A DNA stretch of 63,546 nt, counting the filler, from Lenisia limosa (lineage: Eukaryota; Protista; Breviatea): the NCBI GenBank assembly GCA_001655205.1. It is 14 parts of 14 records of this genome, joined end to end, with 100 filler letters (N's around TTAATTAATTAA, not from the genome) between each part and the next. Parts side by side here need not be neighbours in the genome. Positions count along the whole stretch, not along the records: positions 30,468 to 48,117 come from LPNZ01008858.1; 13 more parts are not named here. The stretch is one strand, 5' to 3'. The position numbers were made by a program, and so were the translations under genes. Numbering within the stretch: position 1 is the first letter of the stretch; the number at the start of each line of letters is the position of its first letter. The notes beneath the pieces were generated by a model. That model made no database searches. It was not told the origin of the DNA and worked only from the letters and a program-made list of their open reading frames with translations. Shown here in pieces: positions 35,577 through 48,289 of this stretch.

Positions 35577-38500
35577 ATGGACTTGGCAGAATCCCTTGAC
35601 CAGGCCAATACTAAGCTCAGGCAGGGTTAGTGATAATTGAATGGTTGTTTTTTTTATCACATTGTTCTATCATAAGTATTTCCACGGCATGACTGACGGC
35701 TTAGACAAGCAGAACATGTCACAACTTCACCAGCGTGTTGAGAGAATGTCAAACTTGATCCAGGTGCTGGGGTTTTCTGATGTTGGTAGTTTGGCAGAGT
35801 GGAGGAGCTCAAAGAAGTAATGTTTCCATACTGGATGTGAATACATGCTTATACTTTCTGATTTTTCAACTGCACCCCTCTCACCAGTAAAGGAGAGGGA
35901 GAACAAGCTCTGGAGTTTCCTTTTCACAGAGTCACCTTTTGGCGACATGGGGCGAAGCCTTGCTGAGGACCAGCCATGTGAGCTTTTTCATTTTTTGCAA
36001 TCAAAATTGTGTATTAAGGGGTTAAGATATGATATTGTGTAATTATAGCTTTATCCTTAGTTTAAACGATTCTTTCACACACAATGAGATCACTACACAT
36101 GCGTTCTATTTGTTACCCATGTCGTTAGACCTAACATTGACAGCGACTGACACGTCATCACAAGCCGCAAGCGAAGCCGAACTTGATGCCTTTATCGGTC
36201 TCAAAGTGGGTTGTTCAGCCAGTTGTTGATACCTATTCTCGTGATGCAACTCCTTGAAGTTCATTTTGGAGCTTTTTTCTGACCATTTTAGCATTTAAAA
36301 GACGACAACATTTCAATGAATGATGTATGCTGGATGGTGAAGATGTGAAATTTTTGTACGTAACAAGCCTATAATTGGGCTTTGTGCTCACGAGAGGGAG
36401 TGGATTTGAAAAACCTGAAATAATATTTTCTGGCTTTTGGGGTATCCAGACAAAGGGCCCATTTGACGTAATGTAGCTTCCGACTTTCGAGATAACTGAT
36501 GAGATCCGGGGATCCTTGCGCACTCGTGACTTCAACATGTGGGAGTACTCGCAATACGAACTGGTAGGCCGTGGTAGCTGTCCTGCGCGACCTGGTAGGC
36601 CGTGGTGGCTGTCCTGCGCGACCTTAGATACAAATAGTTCGCAAATGTGAAACCATTTTTGTTTGATTTTCCTTAGGAGGACCTTTTGTGCATTATCCTG
36701 GAGGATATGTCCTCAGGATTGGAGAAACCGTTACATATGGAAGACATCAAAGCTTTCGTTATGGTGGGTAGATCTTTTAAATTAATAGTAGTAATTGAGA
36801 AGGCATTTGTTGTAATATTAAATCGATTTATCAGCCCCTTGTTTATGTAATAGGTTGTGCGAAAGAACTACAACAACGTCAAATATCACTGTTGGGAACA
36901 TTGTTTCTCTGTGACTCAGGTATGTTCTTATACACAAAATATTAGTATGATATACGATATTTACAAATCCAAATTCACATTAAAAAAATCATACAAGTAA
37001 ACCCCCATCATGGTCCAGATGATGTACGTCTTCATTTACGATCTTCAACTGCGGTCTGTCTTTGACCCCGTCGAAATCCTGAGTCTCATCTTATCGTGTT
37101 TGGTTCATGACTTACAGCATCCTGGTGAGGGTGGTCTCTTTTATCATAAGATCGTATGAAATTTCGCTTTATAGTCAACACAGTATCAGGACAAATCTAC
37201 ATTGTAATCTTGACTTAATCCTCTCAGGCCTCAACAACGCCTATCAAGTTGCCGCTCTCACTGATCTTGCCATTCGCTACTCCGACATCAGCCCCCTGGA
37301 GAACCACCACTGTGCTACTGCATACCCTCTTTTGAGGTAAACTTCATAATGTCACTCACATGATCTTCTGGATTCTTGATACTAATGGACCGAATTAGTT
37401 GGACATTCGCCACGAATTTGATCTTTCAGAGCGCTTCTCAGTGGACAAGAACCTGAGCTCTTCAATCAAATTCGCAAGGCTGTTATCGACTGTAAGCTTG
37501 GTGGTAGATGTAGATAGCCTGTGATATTCATTCTGATACTCTACGGAAGTCAAGATCTAAGGGTCCCCCTTGCTATTTTCTGACGTCCCAGGTGTTCTTG
37601 CCACTGATATGGCAAAACATGTCAGTTTCATTGGCTCCTTAGACGATGCGGTTGAGAAATTCGAGTGAGCTGCACATTGTAAATTGAATAGAGGAATGTG
37701 CATCGTTTTCTTCTTGAGTGCTCTTTGATATTTTTTTATTTTTATTTTTATTATTATTTACAACAATAATAACTTAAAAATCTTTGTTCTAATACATGTA
37801 TTATCCTAGCGTCGTCGAGGAATACTAATCTTTTTTCCAAACAGTTGGAAGTCCCCATCTGACCGTCTGCTTATTATGAAGCTCCTTGTCAAAATGAGTG
37901 ACGTTTCCAATGAACTGCGACGTGAGTTTTTTGGGTAGTATCCTGGATATCAATTCCGTATTACCACCACCATCATCACCACACACCTTATGTCCTGACC
38001 ATACAGCATGGCCTGTTGCCCGGCCGTGGGCCGATAAGCTGCTAGCCGAGTTTGCGGAACAGACCGAAACGGAAATAGCCAATAATCTGCCTGTCACTGA
38101 GTGGATGAGAACTGTCAACGTCGTCCAGCCTAAAATGCAGGTTCGTGTCAGGATTTCTCTCTCTCTTCCGTATGGTTCTCTGGTATTGCAACTATTATCT
38201 CATTTCTCTCCAACTGGGATCAATAGCCCAAGATAACTTCCATATTACTCTGGTTAACACCTCCAGTTGAACTTCATTACGCATGTCTTGATGCCAATGT
38301 ACGAGGCCATGAAGTGAGCTAGACGCGTTGAATATTCATAAATTTGGGCTTTACATAGGTCCAAGTAACGACAGAACATTTCAGAAAATTCTTTATAGTA
38401 TCGATATTTCAGCCTTTTCAGACCGTAATAATCAAGTCAGAGTAGTCAACTGCATTCTAGTACTTTGATGCATGTTGGCATTTCTGACCCTCCAGGAACA

Positions 38501-38742: not shown

Positions 38743-39886
38743 CTGTATTAATCCCCCTTTTTGATTTCAACATAATATACATGTATAAATAAAAGAAACG
38801 AGTACAGTACAGTTAAATAGAATATACCTGAGAAAACAACAAAAGAAAGGTAAAATGGACTAATATACACTGTAAAATGGAGCTTCACTCTTTTGGATTG
38901 AGAGGAAATTTGGTCAAGTCGAGTCTGAATAACGAGTAAAAAACAGGTTGGAAATGGGGAAGGACAAATGTAAACCGTCTCACTCAATTATATCTTGAAG
39001 GTCATCTGGTAAGCCTGAAGTCTTTCTGAAATACTTCCTAAAATCTTATTTCCAAAGCTTATTGGAGCATTGACAGAGATGACAATAAAAATGTGTACAG
39101 ACTGTTTGGTTTCGCATCACGCATCATGAGCACTCTTTCTCCCACCCAACATTATTCGCTTGAGTCGGCTATAACTACAGTTCTCCGGGAGCTCCCTCCT
39201 CCAAACGTCAACACCAAGGTTCTGCATGACGCCAACAACACGACAGTAGTCTTGGATCATGGACGGGGTCGGCTGAGATGAGTTATACTAATCACAGCAA
39301 AAAGCATTTCAATAAAAAAGAGACCAGATGTATTTTGACCCCCCCCCCCCCNNNNNNNNNNNNNNNNNNNNNNNNNNNNNNNNNNNNNNNNNNNNNNNNN
39401 NNNNNNNNNNNNGCCGCATAGAGTCGCTGCCATTCTGGAGAGTTGAGTGTCGGAATATCACTTGTTTAAAAAAGATGGGCAAAATTATGAGGATATTTGC
39501 AGCATTTCCCCCAACCGAAGTGTGCTAATGATTTCTGGAATCTATGTTATTGCATCCCCATTATTATTCATAGTATTCTTGTTTTTTTTTTCTCCTACTT
39601 GAACTAAAGCGACAACTTCTTCAAAGGTCTCAACTTTTACAAAGGGCTTCTGTGAGGCAACATAGTCCCATAAATCGCTGTTCACATTTCTTAAGAGTTA
39701 TATGATTTAGTTTAATTTCCATCTTCTCCAACTAAGTTGAAGTGGCATAAACTTTTCAAGATGATGGAAAAAGAACAAATGAGTTGTGAGTAGGACTTCA
39801 CTTCCATTCGAAAAAGACCGGTAAAATATCGATAGTTTTAGAGGATTTATCGAGAAATTCAGTCATTTTCAAACCGAAGTGAAGAC

Positions 39887-42637
39887 CTAGTTGCGAGCCC
39901 CTAACTTGAAAACTCTTGCCACGAGGTCCTGTAGTCGATTGATGTCATTGATCGGAGCAATTGTGGGTAGAGTAGTTGAGAAAGTACCAGGGACAGGGGA
40001 AAGAGCCGGAGAAGATGTCTGGTGGATTAGCTCAGAGAAGGTTGAAATTGTTGAGATCTGACATCAAAGTAGTAGTAGTGTGTTGATAATCTATCAAAGT
40101 AAGGCTTTAGGATGAACTGGCTTACATTTGATATGGAATCAACCTTGGTGTTGGTGGGAGATGGGTTTACTGATTGGATGGGCTTGGCTTCTTGGACTGA
40201 ACAATGTAAGAGCAAACCAAGATTGCTATAATGAGAAATGTAAACTGACCAGGGTTGACAAATAAATACAACAACTGACGAGGAATAGAGTCTATCCACC
40301 CTTGACTCCCCTACATACCCCCCTCCTTCCATCATTTACAATAATTTGTCCATCCATACACAGGGCTTCAATTAAGAACCGATAAAAATGGATATGAGAT
40401 GTATCAAGAAATCCAGTTTTTTTATGGTGACCCACTTTGATACGGCTTGAAGCTCTTGGGGGCAGCTGGTTGGTTAGAGCTTGAAGGGGCAGATGATGGG
40501 GGTTGGATGGGGACAAGCGGAGGAGAACGTTTGGATTTTGACTTGGGTTTCACTTTAGATCGAGAGGCGGACGGAGGGGGGTTGACTCTCTTAACCCGGC
40601 TTTCTTCTTCTGAAATTTTGGCTAATGCGCTCGAAACGGGCTTGCTTGGCACTACAATTGTGAAAGGAGAGAAGAAGTCTTCTTCACAAAATATTAATTA
40701 GGAAGTAAATGACTTTGAAACCATCATACAGAGCGGAGATGCGGGTTGCAGTTTAGGGGAAGACTTGGGAGATGGTGCTGGGTTTTCAACTAAAGCAATC
40801 AGATGTCTGCAAGTGAAATATCTAAAAATGGGAAACGGCTGAAGCTGTTTTTCCTTACGGTGCACCTAGATTTCTACATGCCTCCAAGTATACTGAATAA
40901 TAGATTGCCAATTGATAAAAATATATAATCTATGATGAAATATGATGCAATAATCTCCACATGCTAACACCGAACGGTATATTGCATGATAATATACTTG
41001 AGTTATAAGGCCAATACTCTTTTATGCGTGATTACATACCTTGATTAAGAGGAACCATGCCCGGCACAGTGGTAACAGGGATGCTGGTGACAGTTTCAGC
41101 TGCTGGTACGTCTTTTTCAGAAGTGGATTGTTTAAGTGCTGATGGTGGGGCAAACGGTTTTGATGAAGGGGGGAGGGAGGGTGATTGTGAATTTAATGGG
41201 TGGAGGGAAGGAGTTGATGGTAAGGGGTTGGAAGTTGGTTGTAAGTTTGGAGACGTGCTTGGAGTCAAAATTACTGGCGTAGAGACAATGGCACGGGATG
41301 ATTTATCTGTGAGAGGGTGAGTGTTGCTTTTGTCACCATTCATACTCCCATGGGGTAGACTGCTACTTCTTTTCGTTGATAGTTTGTCTCCGGGCGGAAC
41401 AGGTTCTGGAGAGGTTCGCGGTGTGGATAGTGGTGTGTGGTTAGTACTGAGGAGTGGAGGTGGAGTGACAGGCGTTGTTTCTTTAACGGATGTGGTAGTG
41501 GACGTGTCTGCATCAGGGATGGAAACTGGAGGCTTGGATGGCGTGGTTTTGGGGAAATACACTGGAGGTGCGGGTCTCTAAGAGCTGTGAGAGAGCATTG
41601 GCATGATTGGGTTGGAGAGAGCTACCTTTTTCTCTATTAAGACGGGTTTATTATTGTGAGCTCGAACTGGAGCCTTAATAATATAGAAGTGTCAAGATTT
41701 GTTGGTTCATGATAACAAAAGGGCACCTTAATCAAAGGGGGAAGAAAAACAAAAATATATGATATGTATAATACATTATATTTGGGAAATTGCATCAATA
41801 AATGAGATTGTGAATCTGAATATTTTCCTCCGTCCATGGAAACTCAACAAACCTTCAAAGGGCTGGACAAAGGCTGTGTGGGCTGCGATATGGGGACAAC
41901 GGGCTTGAAAAGAGGCTTTGGAGGTTGGCTCAGTGCTGCCGTCGGAGGACTGACTTTCGACGCCGCCTAAATGAGAAAAGTAAGGTCAATATTCTGGGGT
42001 TAAAACCCCTCATTGATTTGTGTAACGTCAGTAGACAAATTCACCATGAGCGCTACATTCATCGATAAGTAGTGATTTCCAGCCGTCTTTGAGTAACCTT
42101 ATTCATGAAGTAGTGGAATAGATGTATCACTCTAATTTGAAATACAACTAGTAAAGGCCGTGTCAAAGTTGCAAATAATAACATCACATTTATAAAGGCT
42201 CTCTTTTGGTTTCTCGTCATTGCATTGTATACATAAACATAAAATACATAATATGATATATTACGCTATTGTTTGAGAGTTAAAATAGCCCCTTTGACAA
42301 ATATCCACCCTATTATCCCAAATTGTTCATTAACCCCCAAGATTTCCCTTTGAAATATGCCAAGCACAAAACCCACCTTGTCACCAAAAGGCTTGTTCCC
42401 GGACCAAGCTGGCGACCTCAGGAGGGATTGCGGCCGAGTGATTTGCGGCTGAGAGAGCGTTGTTGTTGGCTTCGAGATTGGCTTAATGGCCTTCTTCGGT
42501 ATCAGTACCGTCTCAGATTTGCTGCCCTCTGTTTTGATGCGCATTGGCTTGGAAGGCATCCTGAGCTTTGCCCCTGCTTTTGGAGAGTTTGGAGGCTGAA
42601 GAGTGAGAATAGGAAAATCTAAAGGAATAAGTACCAT
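39887..42637 (-). CDS. hypothetical Pro/Ser/Thr-rich low-complexity protein
   Basis: Long open P/S/T-rich exons (41032-41562, 40422-40652, 42266-42637) with GT-AG borders, ending ..DINRLQDLVARVFKLGARN*. Confidence 0.55.
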
Positions 42638-43179
42638 TTCCTTGCTACTTCTGACGTTCAGTTCGATATAATTTTACAATTATGGCATAGAAGGGCCGAA
42701 AGGGAAATTAATTGATTAAGTGAGTTCGCTAAACTCCGTTCTCTTGAGATTGGCTTTCTAGTTTTACTACTTCAGAGTTTATTGAGGACATTTAAAAACG
42801 GTTGTAGAGCAAATGAGAGCAAAGTATAAAAACACACATTGTGGTCATGATCGTGGATCATGAGTTCAGTTCTTTGCAGTCGTGTACGCATTTTCAAAAG
42901 ATTGCGTCTTTCAACAGCCAACCAGCCTCCTTTATCAAGCCCTTTAATGCTATGTAATTCTATCATGGATGTGTTTTTTTTAGGAATGATTGAAGGGACT
43001 CAACCCTTAAGAAATTGCGAAAAGCACAGGAGGCCCATGCCAAGCATAAGAACATACACATCAGAAACAACACCAACTACACATCACCCAGAAGAAAACG
43101 GAAGTTGACAGGTCTACCCTTACCATTGGGCCTAAAACGTGAGAAGGGAAGCGGGTGAAACAAAACAAAAAAAAAAGTA

Positions 43180-43260
43180 ATCCTCAGAGTGAGCTGGGTT
43201 ATGGTAACATCACAAGGATCAGAAGACAGTCGTGATAAAAAAGAATCGTCATCGGAGATG
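43180..43260 (-). ncRNA. box C/D snoRNA family A, copy 1 (snR71/SNORD29-type D guide plus snR73/SNORD35-type D' guide)
   Basis: ATGACGA..TCACGACTGTCTT-CTGA..GTGATG..AACCCAGCTCACT-CTGA with a short terminal stem. Guides pair with conserved LSU GUGAGCUGGGUU and AGAC(C)GUCGUGA. Confidence 0.85.
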
Positions 43261-43613
43261 AGAAGGTACAAAAGAGGAGGGGAGCAAACCTTGTCAGCAG
43301 CTGCAGACGGAACCATGAAGTGAAGCAACAGAGAGAGTTGTTCTAAAAATATTAGACAAGTGGTANNNNNNNNNNNNNNNNNNNNNNNNNNNNNNNNNNN
43401 NNNNNNNNNNNNNNNNNNNNNNNNNNNNNNNNNNNNNNNNNNNNNNNNNNNNNNNNNNNNNNNNNNNNNNNNNNNNNNNNNAATTCCAAAAGAGAGCAAA
43501 GCACCTTACAAACCTTGAGTGAAGACTAGACACTTTGCTGTCATTTCATGGGGAAAGAAACTATCTAAGATAATCAGATGGGAAGAAAGGAGGCACCAAT
43601 TGCAAAACGGACA

Positions 43614-43695
43614 ATCCTCAGAGTGAGCTGGGTTATGGTGACATCACAAGGATCAGAAGACAGTCGTGATAAAAAAAGAATCGTCATCGGAGATG
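43614..43695 (-). ncRNA. box C/D snoRNA family A, copy 2
   Basis: Near-identical to copy 1. Confidence 0.85.
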
Positions 43696-43831
43696 GGAAG
43701 GTACAAAAGAGGAGGGGAGCAAACCTTGTCAGCAGCTGCGGACGGAACCATGAAGTGAAGCAACAGAGAGAGTTGTTCTAAAAATATTAGACAAGTGGTA
43801 TGAGACAACGTGTCGTATTTTTTTTGAAAAA

Positions 43832-43900
43832 GGTCTCAGTTGAATCCCTTGGAATCCTCACATTCATTCAGTGGAAAGCTGTGTAAATAACCTCATAGAC
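43832..43900 (-). ncRNA. box C/D snoRNA family B, copy 1
   Basis: GTCT-ATGAGG..CAGCTTTCCA-CTGA..GTGAGG..CCAAGGGATTCAA-CTGA-GAC with a GTC/GAC terminal stem. Confidence 0.75.
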
Positions 43901-44027
43901 AATTCCTTCCAGAGGAAAGGTGTACCCAACAAACCTGATATCGAATGTCAAAGTTCGGCTGGACACGCAAAGGGATAATCTAAAAGAGTTAGAAGAGAAT
44001 AGCGATGGAAGAAATATGTTAACACGA

Positions 44028-44108
44028 TTCCTCAGAGTGAGCTGGGTTATGGTAACATCACAAGGATCAGAAGACAGTCGTGATAAAAAAGAATCGTCAT
44101 CGGAGATG
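44028..44108 (-). ncRNA. box C/D snoRNA family A, copy 3
   Basis: Near-identical to copy 1. Confidence 0.85.
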
Positions 44109-44233
44109 GGAAGGCACACAAGAGGTGGGGAACAAACCTTGTCAGCAGTTACGCTTGACATTTGAAGGAAGCTACAGGGATACTCTAAATTAATCAGAAT
44201 GATAAACTACAATATGATGCTTTTGAAATAAAT

Positions 44234-44302
44234 GGTCTCAGTTGAATCCCTAGGTATCCTCACATTCATTCAGTGGAAAGCTGTGTAAATAACCTCATAG
44301 AC
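44234..44302 (-). ncRNA. box C/D snoRNA family B, copy 2
   Basis: As B1; guide variant CCTAGGGATTCAA. Confidence 0.75.
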
Positions 44303-44439
44303 TATCATAAGCTAGTAGAGCCTCCCACAAACCTTGAATAGAACCTTCAATGACACTTATGCTGATAATCCATTCGAAGTGAATGCATCTAAGAAGACAG
44401 TTAGGGGGAAAAAGGGGGTGACAAAACGCAGAAAAAGTT

Positions 44440-44499
44440 ATCCTCAGAGTGAGCTGGGTTATGGTAACATCACAAGGATCAGAAGACAGTCGTGATAAA
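44440..44499 (-). ncRNA. box C/D snoRNA family A, copy 4 (5' end in N gap)
   Basis: Matches copy 1 up to the gap at 44500. Confidence 0.75.
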
Positions 44500-44623
44500 N
44501 NNNNNNNNNGGGTCAGATGAGATGTCGGAACAAACCTTGTCAAGCGTTGGGGATTGTAGTACAAAGAAGAACTGGAGAAATTAGAAAAGAAATACACAAT
44601 TAATATTGTTGGTGAATATAAAT

Positions 44624-44692
44624 GGTCTCAGTTGAATCCCTTGGTATCCTCACATTCATTCAGTGGAAAGCTGTGTAAATAACCTCATAGAC
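44624..44692 (-). ncRNA. box C/D snoRNA family B, copy 3
   Basis: As B1; guide variant CCAAGGGATTCAA. Confidence 0.75.
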
Positions 44693-44824
44693 TATCCCAG
44701 AAGTGATCAAAGCATCTCACAAACCTTGAGTGAAGACGCCATTGACTCGATAGAATTTTCACGAGCCGTGAGATCATCTAGATTGTTAAGGGGGCAGAGA
44801 GAGAGGTGAAATCCGACGAAAATA

Positions 44825-44902
44825 ATCCTCAGAGTGAGCTGGGTTATGGTAACATCACAAGGATCAGAAGACAGTCGTGATAAAAAGAATCGTCATCGGA
44901 GA
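44825..44902 (-). ncRNA. box C/D snoRNA family A, copy 5
   Basis: Near-identical to copy 1. Confidence 0.85.
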
Positions 44903-45029
44903 GAACAGTCATTCGGATTTGAGCATGACTCACCTCATTACAATATCGAGAGATCCTGTGGACGAATGTGAGTGGTCTGAAAGAGTGAGAGAAGAAAAGA
45001 GCAGGAAAAAAACAGGAGGTAAAGAAGAG

Positions 45030-45096
45030 CTCAGGAAATCCATAGGCTGGCATCACGCTTAGAAAGTCAAATGAAACACGGAGTAGAGATCATCAA
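45030..45096 (-). ncRNA. box C/D snoRNA family C, copy 1
   Basis: TTGATGA..CTCCGTGTTTCAT-TTGA..GTGATG..CTATGGATTTC-CTGA. TCCGTGTTTCA pairs with conserved LSU UGAAACACGGA (the U18 target region). Confidence 0.8.
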
Positions 45097-45232
45097 GGCT
45101 TGGAAAGATAACAGTTTCAGTTAACTGCATACCTATTTGAAAATTTAGAGATACTGTTGCCTGGTCTTAGGAGAGAAGGAAACTAAAACGATCAGGTTGT
45201 GAAACTACTGCGATCAGTTAATTATAATGTGA

Positions 45233-45297
45233 ATCCTCAGAGTGAGCTGGGTTATGGTAACATCACAAGGATCAGAAGACAGTCGTGATAAAAAGAA
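45233..45297 (-). pseudogene. box C/D snoRNA family A, copy 6, lacking box C
   Basis: Both guides and both CTGA boxes are intact, but the 5' segment containing ATGACGA is replaced by unrelated sequence. Confidence 0.65.
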
Positions 45298-45444
45298 GGT
45301 AGGATGTGATGTATATAACAAGTGTGAGCATACCAGAAAAGCAGGTTTGGAGAAACGCTGAAAAGCTGCATATTGCATGGGGTGAATCCTAAAAAAAAAA
45401 AAATTAAAAGAGAATAGGCAAAAAGCATGCTTTGGAATAGAAAT

Positions 45445-45513
45445 GGTCTCAGTTGAATCCCTAGGTATCCTCACATTCATTCAGTGGAAAGCTGTGTAAA
45501 TAACCTCATAGAC
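45445..45513 (-). ncRNA. box C/D snoRNA family B, copy 4
   Basis: As B2 (CCTAGGGATTCAA). Confidence 0.75.
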
Positions 45514-45643
45514 TATATATAATATACGGACAAAAACTCCCCACAAACCTTGGTCAAACTTGAGAGCTGTTTTGCTTGAAGAGGACCAAGATCTAAGACA
45601 ATCAGAGGAGAAGAGGGAGGACAAAATATAGCAAAAAAAAAAA

Positions 45644-45724
45644 ATCCTCAGAGTGAGCTGGGTTATGGTGACATCACAAGGATCAGAAGACAGTCGTGAT
45701 AAAAAAGAATCGTCATCGGAGATG
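45644..45724 (-). ncRNA. box C/D snoRNA family A, copy 7
   Basis: Near-identical to copy 2. Confidence 0.85.
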
Positions 45725-45865
45725 GGAAGGATGGATAACTGCTTCAAGTATTCTCACCTTGCATGCTGAGCTTCTTTGCGAGATTCACGATCAGATCAGT
45801 AGTTTGGCTGAGAGGTGAGAAATAAATGGGGGGGGGGGGACACTTTCAGAGGTGAAATGGAAAAA

Positions 45866-45934
45866 CTCAGGAAATCCATAGGGTGGCATCACGCTTAGAA
45901 AGTCAAATGAAACACGGAGTAGAGATCATCATCG
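45866..45934 (-). ncRNA. box C/D snoRNA family C, copy 2
   Basis: Canonical ATGATGA box C; same guides and D box as C1. Confidence 0.82.
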
Positions 45935-46877
45935 TTTTGAGGAGCAGAAAAGGAGGCGTGGAAGCCCAAATCACCAACATTCGGCAGATTAGAAGTACAG
46001 TAGCTTCACCGCAGGCTGTACATGGTCCTTAGAAACGGAGAGCAGTAACAAGGAACTGGAAAGGTCAGAAAGTGACAAAAACACCATGTTTAGCGTAAAA
46101 CTTGCTTAATGTGGGTGTAATAAAGCTTAATAGTCATCTTTAACAGTGTCATGCAGAAACAAAACAAAAAACTGCAAAATAAGTTCCAACCTTTCAGTAA
46201 CTGATCAAAGAAGCAAATAGCGGGTCAACTTGTAGTCTCAGGTTGCTGGCAAAGGGAGGCTTCCTGAAAAAAGGTCACATGATATTTTTCTTCATATTCT
46301 TTCAAACTCCGCAAGAAGCAAGTAATACTTTGGGAAGATCTTTCCCACTGAATCCCAATGAAGAGAGATATTCGACAATTTATGCAAAAAACCAAAATGG
46401 CTCTTCATAACAGTCGGGATGCTTGGATTCGACACTTTCCTCCCGGAACCAACCTTAAATGCCTCATTTGTGACAGAGTCTACATGGTTGATGTAATCAT
46501 ACAGAATAAGTGTATCATTTCAACTGTCAAGAAGTGGTCAAGACATAAACAATACTTAGACTGGGATTTGAAGAGGATTTTCAAAAAAAAAGGAAAAACT
46601 ATAAAAAGAGTACTGGGGTGGACAAAGGCATCGTTATTTCGGAAATTCTTGATGGCACAGACATTTGCACTATCCGGTTTTTTTCCTTGAGTGAACGTGA
46701 AATTTGCGTGAAATGGTGGGTTGCTGTGTTGTTGGGTTGATTTGATTTGTTAGGGGGCTTGAGAGATAACGAGATTACAGGATGATTACAGTTGGATTAC
46801 GGGAGAGAAAAAAAAAATATATCTGAGACATTGAGACACCACTACTATAACTAATAAACCTAATGCGAGCTATAGAA

Positions 46878-48116
46878 CTACATGACAAGACGGACCTCCT
46901 CAGCGAGGCTGCAGTCGTTGATGAACTTCAGCTTGTCGCCAGACTTCTCGGAGAAGTCCTGCGGGTTGTGAACCGGAAAGTGGGGACAAAATTGATGGAG
47001 AGAGTTTAGTAGTGGACTCTAGAGGAATAAGGAATGGGGTGGCCAAAGGAATGGGCTGATCTTCAGAATTCTACCCTGTTAAATCTAGGTGGAATAGGGT
47101 TTAGCCTGCCCCCAGTATTATAGCTCATCATTTTTAGAAGTAAAATGGGGATAAAGCAGAAAAAAGATACGACAACATAACCCAGCCTACATGAGGTGTG
47201 ACTTCTGACGCATTGGTTTCGGGATCAAGAATCTTAGCCTCCTTGAAAAGGGCAGTAACCATTTCCGAGCAGAACAGCGAGCTGAGGTCTTCTTTGTTGA
47301 GGAAGAACTTGCCAGGCTGACGGAAAGGTCAATCATTGATTTTGGTAACGTGATGAAAATTGAATATTAACTAGTAATGTCTTCGAGAACCGCTTACAAG
47401 GTCAATGGCAGACTTCACAAGTTCGATGTAACTCGTCTCATAGGTCTTGCCACGCATCTCGGTTCTGAAGGCCTTGAAGGCGGTTTTGAACTCCTCTTCG
47501 TTCACTCCTGGGGGGGGGGGGGGNNNNNNNNNNNNNNNNNNNNNNNNNNNNNNNNNNNNNNNNNNNNNNNNNNNNNNNNNNNNNNNNNNNNNNNNNNNNN
47601 NNNNNNNNNNNNNNNNNNNNNNNNNNNNNNNNNNNNNNNNNNNNNNNNNNNNNNNNNNNNNNNNNNNNNNNNNNNNNNNNNNNNNNNNNNNNNNNNNNNN
47701 NNNNNNNAACGCAGCGGCAAACCTTGGAGGCTACGGAAGGCAATTTGGTTGTAAACACCACAGAAGACCTTCTCCGAAAGAGCAAGCATCTCAATACCGA
47801 GGTTGATCTAAGGGGTTACCATTTGGATTACCAGTATCATCAGAAAACGGATAATTTTACCTTGTTGTCCTCGACGTTTCGAATGTTGGCCTTGTTGGTA
47901 GAAGACTCGTACAGCATGAGAGCATCCACAACATCAGACTTGACGACAATGCCACAATGGCTGAAGTCAGCGTTTTGTGATCTCTTGATCAACCAAGAGG
48001 CCTTAATAGTAAGAAAAATCCAAGGAGAACAGCTTCCATCCCTCTCACAATAGTGGTTCCGCTGAAAAGAACGACATCACCGGTCTTGAGCGTGCCACGA
48101 ACCTGGTCGTAGTTCT
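46878..48116 (-). CDS. permuted papain-like amidase (YaeF/YiiX, permuted NlpC/P60 fold), 3' part
   Basis: Exons: GTLKTGDVVLFSG; KRSQNADFSHCGIVV (catalytic His); RGKTYE; KEDLSSLFCSEMVTALFKEAKIL..NASEVTP (catalytic Cys); ends ..EEVRLVM*. His precedes Cys, which is the permuted arrangement. Confidence 0.75.
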
Positions 48117-48289
48117 GNNNNNNNNNNNNNNNNNNNNNNNNNNNNNNNNNNNNNNNNNNNNTTAATTAATTAANNNNNNNNNNNNNNNNNNNNNNNNNNN
48201 NNNNNNNNNNNNNNNNNTAAATACAATAAAACCTTTGAAAAAAGAAGAAGAAAAAAAAAACAGAGCTTTCATGAAAAGTTCTTTTAACT

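Follow-up and report, generated by a model that had tools for sequence, protein, structure and literature searches.

Host genes that carry one small nucleolar RNA (snoRNA) of the box C/D class in each of their introns are best known from animals, where UHG/SNHG1, GAS5 and Drosophila Uhg produce a spliced transcript with multiple introns. The locus described here belongs to Lenisia limosa (Breviatea; GenBank assembly GCA_001655205.1) and occupies, approximately, positions 42760-46055 on the minus strand of a stretch of 63,546 nucleotides, called the window below. It is probably a UHG/GAS5-like snoRNA host gene of the RNA polymerase II type that has grown by tandem duplication of cassettes, each made of an exon and a snoRNA-bearing intron. 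All coordinates given below are window positions, and the features of the locus are on the minus strand.

The likeness to the animal hosts extends to short, poorly conserved exons, to snoRNAs that are predicted to guide modification of ribosomal RNA (rRNA) and to a constrained distance between the snoRNA and the 3' splice site. However, in the animal hosts each intron carries a different snoRNA, whereas here the same three are repeated 2-7 times. The introns are also much shorter and more uniform than those of animal hosts (147-167 nt), with a branch point about 9 nt from the acceptor. According to the initial annotation of this DNA, made from the sequence alone, a non-coding host whose introns hold one snoRNA each is the metazoan arrangement. 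This background is too narrow, because Neurospora crassa has UHG-like hosts of low coding potential with one C/D snoRNA per intron (PMC2780460). The L. limosa locus is like these and other fungal UHG-like hosts in being non-metazoan and spliced, with one C/D snoRNA per intron. The open reading frames (ORFs) of the fungal hosts measure 159-267 bp, compared to 432 nt for the longest one here, and the fungal clusters comprise distinct snoRNAs conserved with yeast clusters, whereas the units described here are tandem paralogs (PMC2780460).

The closest parallel for the repetition is found in mammals. The SNORD113/114, SNORD115/116 and rat Bsr arrays consist of exon-intron cassettes, each with one snoRNA copy, and encode orphan snoRNAs at imprinted loci (PMC11028025). 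As in those arrays, the L. limosa cassettes appear to be repeated within a long non-coding RNA, and the snoRNA copies are homogenized while their flanks diverge. The mammalian snoRNAs are, however, orphan and tissue specific and occur in tens of copies at imprinted loci, whereas about 14 copies are assembled here. Unlike SNORD115/116, at least two of the three L. limosa families are predicted housekeeping rRNA guides, and the three families are interleaved. The repeated snoRNA-intron cassette of the SNORD115/116 type is present, but orphan snoRNAs at an imprinted locus are not: A and C have predicted rRNA targets, and imprinting is not applicable. Tandem snoRNA-intron arrays were thus already known in mammals, and one-per-intron hosts in animals and fungi. 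What sets the present locus apart is the interleaving of three families, of which at least two are predicted housekeeping rRNA guides, in the very short uniform introns of a probably non-coding host.

The array spans positions 46055-43130. Three families of units, A, B and C, had been described there in the order C,A,B,A*,C,A,B,A,B,A,B,A,(gap),A, and searches with exact cores reproduce this order. These searches find 13 units, all on the minus strand: seven of A (75-77 nt), four of B (68 nt) and two of C (65 nt). In the direction of transcription the units are C1 (45866-45930), A1 (45645-45720), B1 (45446-45513), A2* (45234-45305), C2 (45030-45094), A3 (44826-44900), B2 (44625-44692), A4 (44441-44509), B3 (44235-44302), A5 (44029-44104), B4 (43833-43900), A6 (43615-43691) and A7 (43181-43256). 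A2* lacks a C box and is probably a defective, dead copy of A. The 5' end of A4, including its C box, is lost in a gap of 10 N at 44500-44509, where about 17-20 nt would be expected from the other A copies. A strict scan of both strands of the piece containing the array found no further copies of A, B or C, and a scan of the same piece found no other canonical C/D unit.

The count of 13-14 snoRNAs proposed initially stands at 13, with the fourteenth likely to lie within the second assembly gap, 116 N at 43366-43481. This gap is flanked by the 5' flank of a B-type intron, ending in GGAATT, and by the last 23 nt of such an intron. Comparison of these flanks with the intron of B4 suggests that, most likely, about 100 nt are missing, including one B unit, which would be the fifth B and the fourteenth unit of the array.

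Each unit sits in its own GT..AG intron, as had been predicted: 13 introns hold 13 units. Fourteen exons, E1 to E14, were delineated by the placement of AG acceptors and GT donors. The first of them, E1 (45975-46055), has only a candidate acceptor as its upstream border and is followed by the donor GTGAT. The others are E2 (45758-45807), E3 (45549-45592), E4 (45334-45388), E5 (45133-45182), E6 (44934-44976), E7 (44725-44777), E8 (44536-44571), E9 (44333-44388), E10 (44138-44184), E11 (43935-43979), E12 (43725-43777), E13 (43514-43564) and E14 (43290-43342). E12 is one base off E14. E2-E14 measure 36-56 nt, within the range of about 30-56 nt given for the exons earlier. After the last acceptor, TTTTAG/GCCC, a putative terminal exon would extend over 42760-43131, a region with no RNA coverage. 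The AATAAA found at about 42784-42779 gives a tentative position for the 3' end of the host. Its 5' end is also tentative, as E1 may begin further upstream.

The geometry of the 13 introns is very uniform. The snoRNA begins 26-44 nt past the donor and ends 48-58 nt ahead of the acceptor, in agreement with the placement described initially. The nine GTTTG donors had been listed with coordinates that are all exact, each being the low end of the GTTTG; they follow the exons ending at 43290, 43514, 43725, 43935, 44138, 44333, 44536, 44725 and 45549. At the remaining introns the donor is GTGAG or GTATG, also as annotated. The branch-like motif was identified as CTRAY/CTCAC; in 12 of 15 introns its A precedes the AG by 8-9 nt. 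The neighboring protein-coding gene, in which splicing is confirmed by RNA, has the same branch spacing and an AAG/GTTTGT donor. The host and its neighbor thus use the same signals, which are the normal splice signals of this genome. Over the whole region 40790-46056 (minus strand) the spacing between the branch A and the 3' splice site is almost constant at 8-9 nt, and AAG/GTTTGT donors are frequent. A branch point similarly near the acceptor has been described for Giardia and Trichomonas (PMC1501061).

A C box, a D box and a terminal stem, as expected of a box C/D snoRNA, are found in A, B and C. The C box is AUGACGA in A, AUGAGGU in B and AUGAUGA in C, and the D box is CUGA in all three. 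All three families fit a kink-turn (K-turn), in which a terminal stem of at least 3 bp is followed by a 3-nt bulge, by GA and by two letters facing the C-U of CUGA. In A the stem strand UCC is followed by the bulge GAU and CG comes after the GA, the partner strand being CUGA-GGA. The corresponding elements of B are GUC, UAU, GG and CUGA-GAC. In C the stem strand is AGC or AAAAC, the bulge is CUU or GAU, UG comes after the GA and the partner is CUGA-GCU or CUGA-GUUUU. The one or two non-consensus letters in the C boxes of A and B occupy positions pairing with the U and following the G of the K-turn. Internal D'/C' boxes are present as well (CUGA/GUGAUGU in A, CUGA/GUGAGGA in B and UUGA/GUGAUGC in C). 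The terminal stem differs between the two copies of C, being AAAAC/GUUUU in C1 and AGC/GCU in C2, yet it pairs in both.

Conservation is confined to these bodies. The units are 98% identical between copies, whereas the intron flanks have a mean identity of 58-62% for A and B, and of 50% and 61% for the single pair of C. Like these flanks, the duplicated exons, at 51-66% identity, are nearly unalignable, except for one recent pair at 98%. A, B and C would be released as stable RNAs of 65-77 nt.

The guide sequences were compared with ten eukaryotic rDNA loci that span the small subunit (SSU) and large subunit (LSU) genes; these loci come from metagenomes and are not the rRNA genes of L. limosa itself. 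A scan of viral contigs with a 5.8S pattern gave 51 loci, none of which was rDNA. Antisense elements of at least 10 nt beside the D or D' box, with the target nucleotide at the fifth position, are found for three guides, namely the D and D' guides of A and the D' guide of C. The D guide of A is a perfect 12-nt complement of GUGAGCUGGGUU in all ten rDNAs, and position 5 is an A. The D' guide of A pairs over 12 nt, with one mismatch, with AGACCGUCGUGA, where position 5 is a C located 13 nt downstream of the A targeted by the D guide. This spacing and these base types agree with yeast Am2946 and Cm2959, of which the first is served by snR71 and the second, like Cm2948, by snR73 (PMC8307265). A is therefore predicted, from these complementarities, to be a double guide whose targets are adjacent and universally conserved sites in the peptidyl-transferase region of the LSU, the equivalents of yeast Am2946 and Cm2959. 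Yeast uses two separate snoRNAs, snR71 and snR73, for these two sites.

DdR16 of Dictyostelium (RF01566) has the same two antisense elements as A, directed against LSU GUGAGCUGGG and GUCGUGA, and likewise a mismatch opposite the C that adjoins the target C. The two guides are, however, in swapped positions, D' in one RNA corresponding to D in the other. A also shares its D-type guide with yeast snR71, but scores only 26-28 bits where the gathering scores are 60-70.

The 5' (D') guide of C, UCCGUGUUUCA, matches the SNORD126 (RF01168) and SNORD18 families. It is an 11-nt perfect complement of LSU UGAAACACGGA in nine of the ten rDNAs, and its inner 10 nt are complementary in all ten. The register of the guide in the Rfam alignment is that of the SNORD126 consensus, 3 nt from the U18 site. 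SNORD126 guides human 28S Am1310 (PMC8307265), and C is a predicted guide for the equivalent LSU site. Unlike SNORD126, C has UUGA instead of CUGA as its D' box, scores 14.5 bits against a gathering score of 55 and has an unrelated second guide. When concatenates of A, B and C were shuffled, a conserved 12-mer appeared in 0.7% of the trials and a conserved 11-mer in 2.5%. Methylation at the LSU sites named here would follow from the guide sequences. The D guide of B has a 10-bp match to SSU GGAAUUCCUAG, which is weakened by the variation of this guide between copies and was rejected. B is treated as a canonical-looking C/D RNA to which no rRNA target is assigned.

Splicing of the host was examined in two public runs of one study that contain the locus, one DNA-like and the other obtained by sequencing of polyadenylated RNA (polyA RNA-seq), the contigs of which were placed on positions 40800-46600. 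One polyA RNA contig of 189 nt joins, in RNA sense, 43977-43935, 43342-43290 and 44388-44333. On the plus strand, the interval that this contig skips begins with CT and ends with AC, corresponding to GT..AG on the minus strand. Every joint of the contig falls on a predicted border: both borders of E9 and E14 and the 3' border of E11 are confirmed. The introns are thus spliced out, and three exon pieces and two joints of a spliced, polyadenylated host have been found. In the same RNA run the intron of the neighboring gene at 41039-40790 is removed, which shows that the run holds genuine spliced RNA of this organism.

The order of the exons in the RNA contig is unexpected. E11 is followed by E14 (the T variant and not E12), then by E9 and finally by 37 nt that are absent from the window. 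Sharing of k-mers cannot explain this order, because the exons share no more than 11 nt at their ends. The true order of the cassettes therefore probably differs from that of the scaffold. In the simplest reading, the array is larger than assembled, or has been wrongly threaded through the identical 65-77 nt repeats, or a second locus exists. Back-splicing of the host RNA could give such an order as well.

The box and K-turn geometry, the conservation restricted to the unit bodies, the guide matches and the joints in the polyA RNA all back the earlier proposal of tandemly duplicated exon and snoRNA-intron cassettes. In the mechanism that we propose, the minus strand would yield a polyadenylated transcript of many exons, probably non-coding, from which each of the short introns is spliced out. 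After debranching, exonucleases would shorten the intron until they reach the box C/D snoRNA-protein particle (snoRNP) assembled on the embedded unit. Coupling of snoRNP assembly to splicing would come from the fixed geometry, with the snoRNA about 30-40 nt past the donor and about 40-48 nt before the branch point, which itself is about 9 nt from the acceptor. The exons would serve as disposable spacers, conserved only at their splice-site ends, and the multiple copies would raise the dosage of snoRNA per transcript.

Several observations weigh against this explanation. The RNA contig has a depth of only 2 and its exon order is not colinear with the assembly, and positions 43127-41576 are uncovered in the RNA run. 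The stable 65-77 nt products are known as predictions. B is non-canonical in having UGAGG in both its C and C' boxes. The D' guide of A places a U opposite a universally conserved C adjoining the target nucleotide. Perfect and G-U-tolerant searches of the ten full rDNAs gave nothing conserved as a target for B or for the D guide of C. In Rfam no match came near the gathering score of any family in the whole piece, the best scores being 28 bits for snR71, 26 for DdR16, 14.5 for SNORD126 and 15 for SNORD18, against gathering scores of 60, 70, 55 and 41, respectively. Permissive scans gave weak matches that are confined to boxes and guide elements; those of A, to snR71 (27 bits), DdR16 (26 bits) and plant Z161/Z228, lie within its guide parts. 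The Infernal/Rfam comparison suggested by the initial annotation thus supports similarity in the guides, but the gathering scores are not reached. Finally, the longest ORF of the spliced host is longer than expected from shuffled sequences.

This ORF is the starting point of the alternative that survives best, although we consider it improbable, according to which the host is either protein coding or a long 5' untranslated region (UTR) with many introns, belonging to the downstream Pro/Ser/Thr-rich gene (ATG at 42637), so that the snoRNAs are located in introns of a messenger RNA. The spliced E1-E14 measure 717 nt and contain at least seven stops in every frame. The longest ORF, of 143 codons (432 nt), begins with an ATG in E4 and runs into E13. 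Over E4-E13 its frame has no stops compared to seven and eight in the other two, and its length exceeds that in shuffles with P of 0.002-0.02 (about 0.01). The block E9-E12 is 201 nt long, a multiple of 3, and the joint of E14 to E9 seen in RNA preserves the frame. However, the codon usage of the ORF carries no coding signal. Its log-likelihood ratio is -0.10 per codon compared to +0.03 to +0.29 for seven real exons in a leave-one-out test, and G occupies the first codon position in 12% of its codons compared to 23-29% in the real exons. The paralogous exons differ in length and frame, as had been noted earlier, through insertions and deletions that do not come in multiples of 3, and CTGCTGACAAG, an end common to E10 and E12, falls in different frames there. 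Furthermore, the exons diverge as fast as the introns. As the codon signal is absent, G at the first position is low, the insertions and deletions are not triplets and CTGCTGACAAG is inconsistent in frame, the host is probably non-coding. The codon statistics favor the initial claim of a non-coding host, whereas the unexpected length of the ORF speaks against it.

The 5' UTR version of this alternative is favored by the position of the downstream gene, on the same strand and about 500 nt past the last acceptor, and by the blank in the RNA run at 43127-41576, which leaves room for a link between the two. Against it, the AATAAA at about 42784 precedes the next ATG, at 42637, and several upstream ATGs lie ahead of 42637. 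In the preferred explanation the host would be independent of its neighboring genes.

A more exotic possibility, which we regard as distinctly unlikely, takes the RNA contig and the ORF at face value: the exon order would result from back-splicing or cassette shuffling, or the array would be a longer one, in frame with a period of 201 nt, whose ORF is kept open by selection. Such selection might, for example, keep the host RNA translated and stable. If either were true, the locus would be a case, in a eukaryote other than an animal, of a snoRNA host that has a further function at the level of its exons.

It is very unlikely that the locus is a decaying repeat array, in which functionless, snoRNA-like pseudogene cores are kept alike by gene conversion. 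The C box is indeed missing from A2*, the boxes of B are odd and its D guide varies, and the 98% identity could reflect concerted evolution instead of selection. But the homogenization is limited to the 65-77 nt cores with their intact boxes, stems and guides, as selection predicts; the two copies of C have compensatory terminal stems; and the locus is transcribed and spliced.

Trypanosomatids and Euglena have reiterated snoRNA clusters, and a few snoRNA types repeated in tandem with spacers of about 130 nt, as here, resemble them. Yet a polycistronic cluster like those of plants, trypanosomatids or Euglena, in which nucleases act without splicing and splice-like signals are incidental, is scarcely credible for this locus, because a GT donor, a pyrimidine tract, an AG acceptor and, at a fixed 8-9 nt from it, a branch motif are present in all 13 spacers, and because the polyA contig lacks the snoRNA-bearing segments exactly at the splice borders and joins mid-spacer parts as exons, which rules out a purely nuclease-processed polycistron. 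The organization of snoRNA genes is reviewed in PMC2780460.

The host gene of the UHG/GAS5 kind that we prefer is probably not represented completely in the assembly. In the DNA run every repeated unit interrupts the contigs, and none of those listed bridges either of the two gaps. Several of them have loose ends that lead into sequence outside the window. Among six loose-end sequences, from DNA and RNA contigs together, only that of the neighboring gene maps in the window, whereas the 37-nt end of the RNA contig and four DNA ends do not. DNA contigs match the flanks of A and C units at 43158-43207, 45627-45723 and 45840 and then enter sequence that the window does not contain. Contigs that leave the A and C flanks in this way point to extra A and C copies, or allelic variants, outside the assembled array. 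Gaps of N at 39330-39400 and 47507-47720 are bordered by long homopolymers of C or G, and a C run is found at about 45830-45843. The homopolymer-flanked gaps look like an artifact of sequencing or assembly and not like biology.

The array lies between two protein-coding genes on the same strand. The downstream gene (40700-42637) encodes a Pro/Ser/Thr-rich, low-complexity protein and is expressed in the polyA run. The upstream gene (46878-48117) comprises at least five coding exons, and its terminal stop is at 46880-46878. It is interrupted by a gap of N at 47521-47706, and its first visible exon, which seems to hold a 47-nt intron, encodes the pattern GDVVLFSG...SHCGIVV, which we take to resemble that of permuted papain-like (YiiX-type) amidases. 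An intron of this gene contains a possible further box C/D unit of 69 nt (AUGAUGA ... CUGA) at 47063-47131, also on the minus strand, for which neither a good terminal stem nor a conserved rRNA complement was found. On the plus strand, at 37000-38250, a cyclic-nucleotide phosphodiesterase gene is present in short exons, with the HD motif VHDLQHPG followed by SPLENHH; the nearest Atlas clusters carry PF00233.

The L. limosa locus unites the hosting of one snoRNA per intron with the tandem reiteration of a few predicted housekeeping guides, two arrangements that are usually described separately. Annotation of snoRNAs is sparse outside animals, plants and yeasts, and understudied genomes may hold new tandem repeats of snoRNAs (PMC11028025). 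The locus predicts three specific LSU methylations, and its uniform geometry would make it a natural test bed for the coupling of snoRNP assembly to splicing. If L. limosa is a deep-branching flagellate, the array would also be a data point in the debate on the age of intronic snoRNA hosting (PMC3511168).

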